A stretch of DNA of 64,000 bases, from contig JAAOMT010000426.1 in assembly GCA_016748015.1 (NCBI GenBank), forward strand, positions 91,620-155,619, given 5' to 3'. The notes below the pieces were generated by a model, which did no database searches, was not told the origin of the DNA, and was given only the letters and a program-made list of their open reading frames with translations. This stretch comes from Geosiphon pyriformis uo1 (Eukaryota > Fungi > Glomeromycota). Both the position numbers and the translations under genes were made by a program. This document shows, piece after piece, positions 17,203 to 61,628 of this stretch. Numbering within the stretch: the stretch's first letter is position 1; the number at the start of each line of letters is the position of its first letter.

Positions 17203-17967
17203 ATGAATTCCTTTGACCAACATTCAGTTTCAAATCAACAACAACAAACAAAATACTTCAATTCCTTTAAACCTAAACAAGAAAATTTAAGAAACGAAAC
17301 CATCCTAATGGTTGAAAGTATGTTAAAATCAAAACCACAAAATGAACAGATTGAAGTCAAAACAAAATACCATAACAACAAAAAGCAACTGGAAATTCAT
17401 CAACAAACTTCTTTAGGATTCTCAAATCAAATTTTAGTTACATCATTTCTTAATGAGCCTGACACAATATTCTATGATGAACCAGAGGAAATTGGTGGTG
17501 ATTATCTTCTTAGTCATATCGAATACCCTTGTTCTCGATTTTCCTTTGACTCGCATGCATCATTATTCAGCGGAAGTCAAGCTAGTAGTTTTAGTGATGA
17601 CTCATTCGACGACGACACAATAGAAAAGCAATATGAGGAGCTGTTTCGCTTTAAAGATGAAACGTCATATTTTTCTTGTGATTCAAGTGATAGTGAAGAG
17701 GAAGAGGAAGAGGAAGAGGAAGAATATGAATGTGAGAAGACCCAAAACTCAAGAAATGAAGTAAAAAAAGAGGAGGAGGAGGAGGAGGAGGAGGAGGAAG
17801 AAGATTATTTTGGGATAGAAGATGAAACGTTCCAAGATCTGATATATTACGCTACAGATATTTTAAATAATTACTTGGATGAGCAGCATGAGAAAGAAAA
17901 AAAGAGAGAAAAACGTTTAATACAACCAGCTATTATTAGGGAATCCAAATTTTATGATTTTATTTAG
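17203..17967 (+). CDS. Cluster family member 1 (254 aa), acidic-tail class, motifs A and B only partly retained
   Basis: Intact ORF with CAACAAAA-ATG context and TATAAATAGGGAG at 17082. Keeps LRNET (start of motif A) and TSLGFS (start of motif B). The tail aligns with the 18736-19521 protein (IFxxEPxE, FSxDS, SYFS, acidic run, IxYxxxILN). Confidence 0.85.
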   Translation: MNSFDQHSVSNQQQQTKYFNSFKPKQENLRNETILMVESMLKSKPQNEQIEVKTKYHNNKKQLEIHQQTSLGFSNQILVTSFLNEPDTIFYDEPEEIGGDYLLSHIEYPCSRFSFDSHASLFSGSQASSFSDDSFDDDTIEKQYEELFRFKDETSYFSCDSSDSEEEEEEEEEEYECEKTQNSRNEVKKEEEEEEEEEEEDYFGIEDETFQDLIYYATDILNNYLDEQHEKEKKREKRLIQPAIIRESKFYDFI

Positions 17968-18735
17968 TTTTCAATTGACTCTTTTAATAGAGCAGCTGTA
18001 AATATATATATATTTATATTCATGAACTATAAATCTGAAACTTTAGAAATCTATAAATTGTCAACGAAATCCAAATCGCCGAATTTTTTTCTTTCTCAAA
18101 AATATCGATTTCTTTCTTCAGTACTTAATCTGTAAAAATTTTAATTGAAAAGTACTTTTAATTAATCAAACGAGATCAAAAAAGACTTTGATTATCAAAT
18201 ATTTTATCATAAGTAAAAGCTATAACTTGTTCATGGTTTTAATAATGGCAAAAAACCATACAAAAATTGAAACATTTTTCAAAAGAAAATTCGTATCCCA
18301 ATCCTAAATAAAATCTTGAAAACTATAAAATAAATTTTCAGGTCAAACCATATATTATGCTTTTAACTAAGAATAGGCAGGCTTTTATATATTTTATTAC
18401 TATACTTGGTTTTCCAACGGAACAAAGTATAATAATAATAATAATAATAATAACAAACAAATTAATTCAATTTTTGGAATTAGGCACTCAAAAAAATTTA
18501 TATTTTTAACACAATACAGAAACAAAATTTTATTGGACTTCACGCTTACAAATGTTCTTTCTAAAATCTATACAACATCTAAAAGGTACTCTAACATCAT
18601 CCTTAAAAAGATGTAATTGTAAACTATATTAACTTTAATATTTACTTATATATACAATGTTTTTGATAGATAAAAATTGTCTTTTAGCCTTTTGTAGTGA
18701 CTCGTCTAATAAAAGTTGAATTTGATTGATTTTTT

Positions 18736-58450: not shown

Positions 58451-61043
58451 AAATGCGTACTAGGTAATAATGATAAAATTAATTTATATTGCTATTAAAA
58501 ATAAGCAATTGTAATTTTTTAAAGCCCAAAAAAGTTTTTAATGCTGTAATTATCAAAACCGGTTTTAATAAAAAATTCCTAGTTGTTAATATTGTTATAA
58601 ATGTCAAAATTCAAATTACTTGACTTTTGTTTATAAAACTACTTTTTTTTAAAATTTAATAAAGTGTTTTCAAAAACAATAGTATTATAATACTTTATTT
58701 TAAATGCTTAAACTGCTGATTAATTTGCATATTATCAATAATTATTATTATAAAGCTTAATAAAATACCTGAAAAAAAGATTTGTTTTATGAAAACAAAA
58801 TTCAAGGTTTAGTTTCAGTAATTGAATCATTTGGAATATTTTATTAAATATTTTATTAAATAACTGAATTTTTTTTTAATCCAATATTTCTAAAAAAAAT
58901 CAAATCTTTTTAAAAAAGTAATTTATTTCTTGACTTTATCAAAATTTGAAAATTAAATTCTTTTAGATAAAAAAAAATTAACTTTGATACAACAACAGCC
59001 TATTGAAATAGTAAAAAAGCTTTGTAGTAAATTTTAAAATTTTTTTAAAAACCAACAAGTAGATTTATATGCTAAATTAAGCATTATTATAGAGTAGTCT
59101 TGAGGTTAAACATGTGTAAAAAGTGCATAGGCCACATCTATTTTTGAAAATATCCTGTTGTAACTTGTAGATAGTGATTGGATCACACTCAATAAAGCAT
59201 GTTGGTAAGTAGTGGTTTCTTAGAGTCTAAAGATTTGCTCAATGTACAAATTATTTAACCTCTCACAGTTCGTCAAACCCATTTCTTCGACTTGAATTAA
59301 CCACAAAGTTTGTTCATTCTTTCAAAGGGAAACTGGCTTACTAAAACATGTCTCCGATTTTTCTTTAAAGTCTCCTCACCTATTATACTAAAGATTATAT
59401 ACCGTAATTTATCTTGAGATTACAAACGAATTACTGTATTCATTAATTGCTACCAGATCTATGCTGACGAAAGATTATTAGGATTATTTTTAAATCGACT
59501 TTAAACACTCTGATAATAATAAATGTGCAAACTTTACTCAAATTTACTATATCATGACTAGAAATGTATAAACTCTTTCAAGTTATTCCCTTTTCAATGT
59601 TTCCCCTTTTTTTTAAAACAAAAAAAGAACAATGATTCCCATTATCATCATTTACTAGCTATCCGAGATTTTTTAGGATCAATGAATTTTTTGCTTAAAA
59701 TACTTTTTCCAACATGTGAGGATGAAGGACCTTGATGTTCATCTGAACTTTTAAAGGTGAAAACCGGAATATTGTGGATTGATCGAATCTTTTTAGAACT
59801 TTATTGCGCATCAATAAAGTTAGGAGGTTATTTGACATCATGAGCATAATAACAAAGTCTCGAAATAAATTCTATTTGCATTATCTAAGAAGTATCATTG
59901 AGCATCTCTAGTTAGGAGATTTCTATGTTCTCTCCGTTGTAGAATATGAATGTAAAAAATATCAAAGTTTCTTGTTGAGGTCTTTGTTATGAATTTTTAA
60001 AGTTTCACTTTCAAACTTGAAAGCTGCAGAATTTCTAACTCAAAATAAAACACAGAATAAAAAAGTGAAAGCATATGACAAGACGCTTATTTAAAAAACT
60101 TGCTTAAATCATTGTCGCGGGGTTTTACAAAAAAAATTTCTTGAAATGAAACAAGTTAAAAAGAAATAACATCGATTTACAATAGTTCTTTCAAACCTTT
60201 TGTTCATTTCAAAGTAATGCCCAGATTTTTAAATGTAAAACAGGAATTCAAGTCCTTGATAGGAAAACGCATTTAATCAAATTCTCGGATCTCTGTAAAA
60301 CCACAAGTTTTTTATGTGATACTCACGCATTTCAAAATTATCCAATAGTTTGTCAAAAAAATTCGTTGATCAGCAATTCTGACCTGCAATAAAAAATGAT
60401 TTTGAAACCTGGATTGTCATGAATAATTAAAGTAGCGAGTAACATGACCATCAGAAAGAGGATCAAATTATGGCCTTTTATCGGTGATATCCTAAACAAT
60501 TGCCAAGTTCTCGTTGTTCACCGTCATCCATCATCCGTCATCTTAGATTTTGTGTATTTCACCTATAGAACGGAAAAATTTGGTCTGGCTATGACGAAAA
60601 AATTTCAAAATTATATTTTATGCCCTTTTACCCTTTCAGGAATTTTTGCTTTCATTAGAATGAATTTAACTATCATTAATTATTGATATTGTGACCAAAT
60701 GATCTACATGATCATTCATTTATCAAAAAAATCCGGATCACCATTGTGTAAATCTCTAAAAATAGTGATAGAAATGTAATAAATATTGGTCCTCCCTTTT
60801 ACACACAAATTAATTGGTATTCAATTCAAAAAATTAGGTGCGAGTTCAAAAGTGAATTTATATTTAAATTGCTGTATATCCTCAATTCTCACACAAATAA
60901 ATACCCTTAAAACTTGATCCCGTATCTCTTTCTGAAATACCTTTGAAAAACTCTTTTATTATAATAATAATAATAATAATAATAATAATAATCTCGTTTC
61001 GTTAACTCACAAATTCAGAGATTCAACCTTTTCATTATATACA

Positions 61044-61628
61044 ATGATGGCAACTTTAAGACGAACACCAGCAATAAAAGATTCAATAAAAAGATCTTCC
61101 CAAAAAGTATTTCATACGAGTACTTCGGCAACTTGGGATAACAAAAACCAACAAAAATTTGATATCAGACATGAAATGATGTCATTCATGTTAAATGCAA
61201 TTTCGAATCAATACGAAAATCATAAAAAAATTCCTTCGGAAGTATTAAATAAATTCTCATCGCAACAAACAAACAACCCAACAATGTTACAAAATTATAT
61301 TGAAACCGATGAATATAATGAAGAAACCGACGCTTTGCTATTTACCAAATTTTTCAACTTTTTACGGGGTGAAGAGGAAAAAATAGAAAGACGACATCCA
61401 GAGAAAAGTCATATCACAAAAAGACAAACAATATCCAATGAAAACCCAACAAGAACACCACTTTCAAGTCTGAAAAGGCAATCTTTAGCGAATAGTACTT
61501 GTGATCCTTACCCGGTACGACCATCAAGTCTATCAATTTTGGAATCAAAAGTTACCTCTGAAAACCCTCGCAAGGAACCAACAAAATTATCTCGAAGGCC
61601 TCATGTTTTACGAAGAAAATTTTTATAG
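61044..61628 (+). CDS. Cluster family member 9 (194 aa), basic-tail class
   Basis: Motif A IRHEMMSFMLNAISNQYENH, motif B TDALLFTKFFNFLRGEEEKI. Ends RPHVLRRKFL, like member 5. Confidence 0.9.
   Translation: MMATLRRTPAIKDSIKRSSQKVFHTSTSATWDNKNQQKFDIRHEMMSFMLNAISNQYENHKKIPSEVLNKFSSQQTNNPTMLQNYIETDEYNEETDALLFTKFFNFLRGEEEKIERRHPEKSHITKRQTISNENPTRTPLSSLKRQSLANSTCDPYPVRPSSLSILESKVTSENPRKEPTKLSRRPHVLRRKFL

Follow-up and report, generated by a model that had tools for sequence, protein, structure and literature searches.

A candidate Archaeosporales-restricted family of disordered proteins with two amphipathic helices as probable binding modules

Here, we describe a cluster of small genes in Geosiphon pyriformis, located in a window of 64,000 nucleotides (the whole stretch of DNA that was analysed; contig JAAOMT010000426.1, forward strand). 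The genes encode proteins that share two short motifs, A and B, and in some cases a third, C. Together with the other features of the window, they are as follows:

17203..17967, + strand: M1, 254 aa, very acidic (net charge -39), with a partial motif A, a truncated motif B, the motif C string IFYDEPEE and an M2-like C-terminal helix
18736..19521, - strand: M2, 261 aa, motif A at 19407-19354, motif B at 19242-19195
22670..23035, + strand: M3, 121 aa, motif A at 22778-22831, motif B at 22940-22993; annotated protein P0004
26076..26468, + strand: M4, 130 aa, motif A at 26220-26273, motif B at 26313-26366
29217..29864, + strand: M5, 215 aa, basic, motif A at 29358-29411, motif B at 29511-29558; P0001
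40633..41076, - strand: M6, 147 aa, motif A at 40977-40924, motif B at 40809-40762
48225..48866, + strand: M7, 213 aa, motif A at 48342-48395, motif B at 48552-48599; P0006
55448..56107, + strand: M8, 219 aa, basic, motif A at 55547-55600, motif B at 55766-55813, with a poly-Ser linker
61044..61628, + strand: M9, 194 aa, basic, motif A at 61164-61217, motif B at 61329-61376; P0003
10968..11588, + strand: possible distant relative, 206 aa, with only a motif-C-like stretch that also occurs in M1, M2 and ORFs outside the window
38096..39350, no strand: dispersed repeat (transposon remnant) in the M5-M6 spacer
46643..46993, no strand: assembly gap, intergenic, between microsatellite arrays and outside every member

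An earlier, sequence-only reading of this DNA had claimed nine paralogs with intact reading frames and a shared two-motif signature. Its eight motif A and eight motif B strings were each located exactly once, in the expected frames and places, within eight ATG-to-stop ORFs of 121-261 aa (M2 to M9), which bears out the signature and the frames. The consensus of motif A is [IV]-R-N-E-x-I-S-L-L-F-D-A-I-x-x-E-F-E, an amphipathic helix, and that of motif B is S-L-x-F-T-x-F-F-x-x-L-R-x-E-E-x-K-[IL]. The motifs also stand well clear of shuffled controls: against a profile built from the remaining members, every member scored 30.1-65.8 bits, compared with at most 14.4 bits for the best of 500 composition-preserving shuffles. 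The linker between the motifs varies from 13 to about 52 residues across the paralogs, being shortest in M4, the most divergent member. Beyond the motifs, subgroups share further short stretches, namely R-R-P-H-V-L-R-R-K-F (at the extreme C-terminus of both M9 and a paralog on contig C787), P-P-R-S-P-L-[DE]-K-L, and the acidic motif C, [IV]-[FY]-x-[DE]-E-P-x-E, which in M2 follows motif B and precedes a poly-Asp tail. The C-terminus of M5 bears the basic motif R-H-I-L-R-R-K-L.

The ninth claimed paralog, M1, is weaker. It matches the family profile in the motif A region only (hhalign, E 0.011) and has no significant BLASTP match to M2; when the two are aligned colinearly, z is 3.4, and 2 of 500 shuffles reach that score. 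Thus the count of nine stands for eight members, and M1 is probably a divergent relative of its neighbour M2.

Profile searches found exactly 10 motif-B genes genome-wide: 8 in the window, 1 beyond its end and 1 elsewhere. Nine are contiguous on contig C417 and one lies on C787. The array does not end at 61628, as had been proposed, since a tenth member was found 2.8 kb beyond the window end; the gene on C787 is an eleventh, with M1 included. The assembly gap, which is 5.6 kb away from M6 and precedes M7 by 1.2 kb, is flanked by the trinucleotide microsatellites (AGT)n (46269-46440) and (TAA)n (47187-47365); because no family ORF touches it, continuity and frame across the gap are irrelevant for every member. 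Transposon debris had been described between the genes, and this proved correct for one stretch, at about 38.1-39.4 kb, where the dispersed repeat recurs more than 30 times across the rest of the genome, the copies being 70-85% identical. Adjoining this repeat-rich stretch is an unrelated 129-aa ORF (37426-37815) with no Pfam match. The claim that no unrelated intact gene interrupts the array could be weighed only for unspliced ORFs, since spliced genes would escape the scan. No shared sequence motif emerged from the k-mers in the 800 bp upstream of 11 genes: the best had p about 6e-4, uncorrected for the thousands of k-mers compared.

Are these ORFs genes at all? That they are non-functional, being ORFs that arose by chance, remnants of transposon genes or annotation artefacts, is barely credible, even though they have no known domain, repeats lie around them and a look for RNA runs covering 17100-26500 found none listed. 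Ten ATG ORFs of at least 120 aa were observed where 0.1 were expected, a 100-fold excess in DNA of 24% GC, and GC content is 30-36% in the ORFs compared with 24% in the spacers. Several synonymous codons are used at the invariant or conserved residues (5 for Arg, 4 for Leu, 4 for Thr), and third-position identity in the motif comparison is 0.40. Intact orthologs occur in two Ambispora species, and a single Ambispora ortholog pair of 176 codons gives a dN/dS of 0.34 (dS 0.53), which indicates purifying rather than diversifying selection. A transposon origin is further opposed by the number and arrangement of copies, only 10 with nine in one array rather than dispersed, and by the lack of any transposase, reverse transcriptase or integrase domain in Pfam searches. 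We rejected a transposon-encoded protein as a candidate on the same comparison, the true repeat at 38.1-39.4 kb having more than 30 dispersed copies. Hence the ORFs look like genuine genes under protein-level constraint, and the proposal that the cluster is selectively maintained is supported by ORF excess, codon variety and, in one pair, dN/dS.

The cluster is also old, as had been suggested. There is no DNA-level similarity among the paralog loci, and terminal branches of the phylogeny exceed one substitution per site. A tree of 14 cores pairs only M9 with the C787 paralog and M6 with M2; being otherwise unresolved, it does not allow the duplications to be dated relative to speciation.

The family went unrecognised in the sequence-only reading, and our searches agree with this. 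Pfam (hmmscan, E <=1) returned only sub-threshold low-complexity matches for 19 family or neighbouring proteins and nothing for 10 spacer ORFs, and the precomputed Pfam assignment is '-' for all Ambispora and Geosiphon homologs. An ESM Atlas feature search with M9 and M4 gave no usable match, Foldseek found no match in the PDB for the M4 model, and a full-text literature search for the motif strings returned only OCR noise. A PDB profile search had no significant match, its best being a helix of TFIIS. We considered and rejected the TFIIS central domain (TFIIS_M), which matched at E 0.25-1.2 over helix 1 only, with no Pfam match at E <=1. Motif A lines up there with helix 1 of domain II of yeast TFIIS, and the alignment runs on into an E-x-P-P stretch that M5 and M8 also contain; the TFIIS matches all come from one protein, and the family has neither the third helix nor the zinc ribbon.

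An exhaustive HMM search of 1.84 billion protein representatives recovered only proteins of the same genome and one Ambispora protein, apart from two large proteins, P0008 (2671 aa) and P0009 (840 aa), which matched in short or fragmented stretches. Among the proteins of Geosiphon pyriformis, P0007 corresponds to KAG9307700.1, in agreement with the earlier guess of Glomeromycota. Three word-based searches added kin only from Ambispora gerdemannii, with four motif-B ORFs clustered within 8 kb, and A. leptoticha, with one family member on its contig. Clustering is repeated in A. gerdemannii. A check for synteny by tblastx of the Geosiphon locus against the Ambispora contigs gave no match at 1e-4. 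The family has thus been detected so far only in Archaeosporales, in G. pyriformis, A. gerdemannii and A. leptoticha, with its motifs conserved between two families of the order, Geosiphonaceae and Ambisporaceae. This restriction is a lower bound on the distribution, because other Glomeromycota were searched via annotated proteomes with E-value thresholds set for billions of sequences, at which a 20-residue motif falls below significance. Although Geosiphon has a clear motif A, the version in the Ambispora members is degenerate, being weak or absent, and for this reason motif B is the ancestral core.

Many lineage-specific genes of arbuscular mycorrhizal fungi sit in transposon-rich, gene-poor compartments, and the array region, at 12% coding and with repeats, resembles such a setting. 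Could the proteins be symbiosis effectors, delivered to the Nostoc or plant partner without a classical signal peptide? They are small, tandemly duplicated, fast-evolving and lineage-restricted, as effectors might be. Against this, all 15 proteins lack a signal peptide or hydrophobic N-terminus by a simple hydropathy test (rather than SignalP), the mean over the N-terminal 20 residues ranging from -1.56 to +0.86 and rising above zero in M4 and M10 only. Nor is there a transmembrane segment, the maximum 19-residue Kyte-Doolittle mean being <=0.99, which confirms the earlier claim that both features are absent. With only 0-3 Cys per protein, selection that is purifying, and a family common to fungi whose partners are as different as a cyanobacterium and plant roots, we regard an effector role as very improbable. 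Other lineage-specific tandem families of arbuscular mycorrhizal fungi are likewise small, fast-evolving and unannotated in a gene-poor, repeat-bearing context; unlike those, the present family is not secreted or Cys-rich, is common to Geosiphonaceae and Ambisporaceae, and has two conserved helices under purifying selection.

Members of the family are short proteins of 120-260 aa, encoded without introns and disordered over most of their length. Polar or disorder-promoting residues make up 62-74% of the chain, in agreement with AlphaFold2 models and with the earlier description of largely disordered proteins with two helices. In M6, helices are predicted at residues 25-64 (pLDDT about 91) and 92-110 (about 70) with the remainder disordered, and in M4 at 41-69 and 79-129, with pLDDT up to 96 overall and 93-96 in the helix at motif B. 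The pTM of both models is 0.29-0.31, which predicts no compact fold and lends no support to the proposal that the two helices fold together. A homodimer prediction for M6 residues 22-118 scored 0.02, which counts neither for nor against binding.

These models bear on an alternative in which each amphipathic helix associates with the other one of its own protein or with a helix of another chain, forming a helical hairpin, a coiled-coil or a four-helix bundle, so that the paralogs homo- or hetero-oligomerise rather than bind an external partner. Both motifs have the hydrophobic periodicity (i, i+3/4, i+7) suited to such pairing, the predicted helices can be long (as at residues 79-129 of M4), and the opposite net charges among paralogs, from -39 to +17, could favour hetero-pairs. 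The nearest shapes to the M4 model in the Atlas are bZIP- or coiled-coil-like helices, although these are generic long-helix proteins (bZIP, shootin, MAP7) and uninformative. However, the models show no confident intramolecular packing, the A-B linker is of variable length, and Ambispora has no clearly preserved motif A, making it unlikely that obligatory A-B pairing was ancestral. On balance, we consider helix pairing unlikely.

Instead, we propose that this is an Archaeosporales-restricted family of disordered proteins in which the two amphipathic helices act as binding modules, an explanation to which we give somewhat better than even chances. The paralogs would descend from old tandem duplications and have remained together, each being a disordered chain that bears short conserved modules. 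Most likely, the two helices would fold upon binding, docking onto one conserved cellular partner, and the variable linkers, tails and opposite net charges may diversify what each paralog brings to that partner.

What might the partner be? One concrete hypothesis is PCNA, with motif B as a PIP-degron, such that the disordered proteins would bind PCNA on chromatin and be degraded through CRL4-Cdt2, either during S phase or in response to DNA damage. The PIP-degron consensus is Q-x-x-psi-T-D-aromatic-aromatic-x-x-x-[K/R] (PMC10939359), in which K/R at +4 is required and TD is frequent at positions 5-6 (PMC6881253). Motif B shares with the PIP-degrons of Cdt1, p21, Set8 and Spd1 a hydrophobic position 4 (F in 15 of 15 sequences), T at position 5 (12 of 15), FF at positions 7-8 (15 of 15) and, at +4 after the aromatic pair, an Arg that is invariant in all 15 despite being encoded by 5 different codons. 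Such a family would resemble fission-yeast Spd1, likewise small and disordered, or Cdt1, expanded to ten paralogs. The differences are considerable. All 15 sequences lack Q1, the residue being mostly Ser (Q1 is absent from 34% of confirmed PCNA binders; PMC6881253), position 6 is D in one of 15 and E in one of 15, and position 4 is aromatic where the canonical PIP consensus is aliphatic. Conservation runs past the PIP pattern (L at +3, EE at +6/+7, I/L at +10), so that it and the predicted helix extend about 10 residues further than in a PIP-degron. That long alpha-helix is also unlike bound PIP peptides, which are mostly extended after a single turn (PMC6881253), and the motif A helix has no counterpart in PIP-degron proteins. 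Moreover, the resemblance was picked out post hoc among many linear motifs. We therefore think it improbable that motif B is a PCNA-interacting PIP-degron. It is slightly less probable still that motif B works as one across about ten PCNA-docking, CRL4-Cdt2-degraded paralogs in Archaeosporales, with motif A as a second partner-binding helix and differing tails; if this were true, several cellular processes would be tied to DNA replication through a system of many paralogs. The PCNA gene of Geosiphon is itself spliced, with introns. To our knowledge, the cell cycle of the coenocytic, multinucleate cells of Archaeosporales is essentially unexplored.

Other parallels to the family are the fungal ribonucleotide reductase (RNR) regulators Spd1/Spd2, Sml1, Dif1 and Hug1, which are of similar size (about 70-130 aa upward) and disordered. 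Like the family, they are lineage-restricted strings of short conserved motifs with paralogs; in contrast to them, the genes described here are far more numerous, at ten, and form a tandem array, and we detected no sequence similarity between the two.

If the proposed explanation of disordered proteins with helical binding modules is right, this is an undescribed order-restricted family with at least ten deeply diverged paralogs kept in one array under purifying selection. The lineage of Geosiphon and Ambispora is basal among arbuscular mycorrhizal fungi, and we know of no genetics in it. The conserved linear motifs are directly usable as baits for the partner, be it PCNA or another protein. 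Taken as one more lineage-specific family, it has moderate value at present, which would rise sharply only with a partner or a link to the cell cycle.

Finally, motif C would link M1, M2, the Ambispora protein P0012 and five further ORFs on C417. In leave-one-out searches, 6 of 8 sequences rank in the top 1%; with E-values of 0.08-8, the link is suggestive only. The ORF at 10968..11588 ranks 9 of 2631 with an E-value of 0.08, which is suggestive of a distant relative, and the locus may reach about 94 kb if still other distant relatives are counted.

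The first observation is confirmed: the array encodes a new protein family, one that lies outside every described family reached. All 16 motif peptide strings (motifs A and B, the two conserved helix motifs) are each present exactly once, paired, across eight ORFs that are complete from ATG to stop and encode products of 121-261 aa. In a leave-one-out test, each member scored 30-66 bits against a profile built from the nine others, while shuffled members (500 shuffles each) never exceeded 14.4 bits; with scores so far above the shuffles, the family similarity is not a matter of chance or composition. 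The sequence-only reading had counted nine paralogs (M1-M9), of which eight are secure at these scores. M1 is a probable relative: it matches the family profile in the motif A region (hhalign E 0.011) and its colinear alignment with its tail-to-tail neighbour M2 beats 498 of 500 shuffles, with a BLASTP match between the two that is not significant.

These genes stand out from their surroundings. The window is AT-rich (GC 10-32% per 2 kb), and the 45 kb between 17 and 62 kb hold ten ORFs of at least 120 aa that begin with ATG, against a mean of 0.1 in a first-order Markov simulation of identical DNA; nine of the ten are M1-M9. GC content is 30-36% in the ORFs and 24% in the spacers, with coding sequence making up only 12% of the stretch. 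No decayed family copies were detected in a search of the array spacers, and no spacer ORF has a Pfam domain. Transposon debris had been reported between the genes, a description borne out for 38.1-39.4 kb (window 38096-39350): this repeat recurs more than 30 times, dispersed over many contigs at 70-85% identity, lies in an island of higher GC content (up to 44%), and has ORF remnants that carry no Pfam domain. The assembly is interrupted within the array:

46643-46993: assembly gap (N run), between M6 (ends 41076) and M7 (starts 48225)

Dense trinucleotide microsatellites, (ATT)n, (TGT)n, (AGT)n and (TAA)n, flank the gap on both sides (window 45480-47753) and yield long artefactual homopolymer ORFs in all frames. 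There are no member ORFs near the gap, and hence frame and continuity across it are irrelevant to the finding. Upstream of the array, an extremely AT-rich stretch (10-14% GC) holds a direct repeat of ~530 bp (window 4196-4713 and 5414-5947, 82% identity). At window 8967-9044 (minus strand), an F-rich 118-aa ORF has a string, F-T-Y-F-F-N-N-I-R, that fits a loose motif-B pattern; at E 0.28 against the profile it is probably a chance occurrence in AT-rich DNA.

In the 128-Mb Geosiphon assembly the window corresponds to C417:91620-155619. The entire assembly was searched in six frames with two profiles, one of the A-to-B core and one of motif B alone, and both recover the identical ten genes: eight in the window, one 2.8 kb past the window end, and one on another contig, C787. 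These searches linked no third locus to the family. The two genes outside the window are:

L010:1432-1974 (G000:C417:156026-156568), plus strand: tenth array member, 180 aa, canonical motif B and weak motif A
contig C787: solitary paralog, 181 aa, identical to KAG9307700.1 (Geosiphon pyriformis)

The former carries the array past 61628, where it had first been taken to end. The paralog loci are without similarity at the nucleotide level and the terminal branches of the protein tree exceed 1 substitution per site, thus the duplications are old, in agreement with the original view of the cluster. Three ORFs beside the C787 gene (L020:3-629, L020:1907-2557 and L023:3977-5149) have, by eye only, the look of Sel1-like repeats.

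What relatives does the family have outside Geosiphon, a glomeromycotan that belongs to the Archaeosporales? No Pfam family was matched by the members. An exhaustive HMMER search with the ten-member profile against 1.84 billion cluster representatives returned only annotated proteins of the genome itself and one 156-aa Ambispora gerdemannii protein, along with two large proteins whose matches are short or broken into fragments. Word-indexed searches added two A. gerdemannii proteins and one from A. leptoticha, with no match in fungi beyond these two species. The searches covered annotated proteomes only, and in a set of billions of sequences a motif of 20 residues is too short to become significant; the apparent lack of the family in other Glomeromycota is therefore no proof of restriction. 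One A. gerdemannii contig has four motif-B ORFs inside 8 kb, and clustering is thus common to two families of the order. Tblastx found no neighbours shared by the Geosiphon and Ambispora loci. Motif A is vestigial at best in the Ambispora members, and motif B is the ancestral core. An ORF 8 kb from the Ambispora cluster (L016:18525-19655, minus strand, CAJVPL010000294.1) looks by eye like a MATA-type HMG-box protein, with only a weak precomputed match to Pfam HMG_box; none of the long ORFs adjoining the Geosiphon array was recognised as an HMG-box gene.

Selective maintenance, as first suggested, is supported by the ORF excess, by dN/dS and by synonymous codon variety. Intact orthologs occur in A. 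gerdemannii and A. leptoticha, and comparison of the two gives dN 0.18, dS 0.53 and dN/dS 0.34 (one pair, 176 codons). The Arg that is invariant across 15 motif-B sequences is encoded by five codons and the conserved Leu and Thr by four each, and the Geosiphon paralogs have a third-position identity of 0.40. Conservation lies in the protein and not in a DNA element.

The consensus of motif A is [IV]-R-N-E-x-I-S-L-L-F-D-A-I-x-x-E-F-E and that of motif B is S-L-x-F-T-x-F-F-x-x-L-R-x-E-E-x-K-[IL], with three Phe and the Arg invariant in the 15 sequences. A low-complexity linker of 13 to ~52 residues joins them. Subsets of members carry other stretches: M9, M5 and the C787 gene have a basic one at the very C-terminal end, R-R-P-H-V-L-R-R-K-F; P-P-R-S-P-L-[DE]-K-L comes after motif A in M5 and M8; and there is an acidic motif C ([IV][FY]x[DE]EPxE) with poly-Asp or poly-Glu tails in M1, M2 and the Ambispora protein P0012. 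Net charges lie between -39 and +17, 62-74% of residues are polar or disorder-promoting, and hydropathy gives no transmembrane segment or signal-peptide-like N-terminus. AlphaFold2 with the family alignment predicts two helices that coincide exactly with the motifs, at residues 25-64 (pLDDT ~91) and 92-110 (~70) of M6, and at residues 41-69 and 79-129 of M4 (pLDDT up to 96). Outside the helices confidence is low in both models, pTM is ~0.3, and a compact domain is absent from them. The earlier picture of disordered proteins with two conserved helices, both amphipathic, thus stands, and the first interpretation overall is partly supported.

In light of this anatomy, what might the proteins do? 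Helices A and B are most likely folding-upon-binding modules for a conserved partner, with the variable tails diversifying the paralogs; the two might also pair, within one chain or across chains. Set against published definitions (PMC10939359; PMC6881253), motif B might be a PCNA-interaction motif of the PIP-degron type, which we consider unlikely: the hydrophobic position 4 and aromatics at 7-8 fit the broad PCNA-interaction class, and of the degron-specific residues Thr5 occurs in 12 of 15 sequences and the basic +4 in all, but Gln1 is lacking throughout, Asp6 occurs in 1 of 15, and motif B is predicted to run on as a long helix. In Geosiphon, introns interrupt the PCNA gene. Two strong PCNA_N matches lie at G000:C610:253044-253370 (174 bits) and G000:C575:813163-813516 (149 bits), the latter with an in-frame TGA that may reflect an intron, a pseudogene or a second PCNA paralog. 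In kind the family is familiar, being a lineage-restricted group of small, disordered, tandemly duplicated strings of motifs in a repeat-rich fungal genome; it yields one sharp testable hypothesis, PCNA interaction.

Motif C is also found in five further ORFs on C417, the contig of the window, between 64 and 158 kb. The candidate distant relatives, with a motif-B-like SLxFxxF and/or [IV][FY]x[DE]EPxE, are:

L019:2168-2728, minus strand
L024:2742-3596, minus strand
L021:6810-7184, minus strand
L021:8729-9178, plus strand
window 10968-11588, plus strand

At least two of the five are annotated as hypothetical proteins (G9A89_002178 and G9A89_002199); G9A89_002182 and G9A89_002183 were matched too, without ORF assignment. 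Leave-one-out support for motif C in these ORFs is only suggestive. They may be distant relatives, which would make the locus ~94 kb long.
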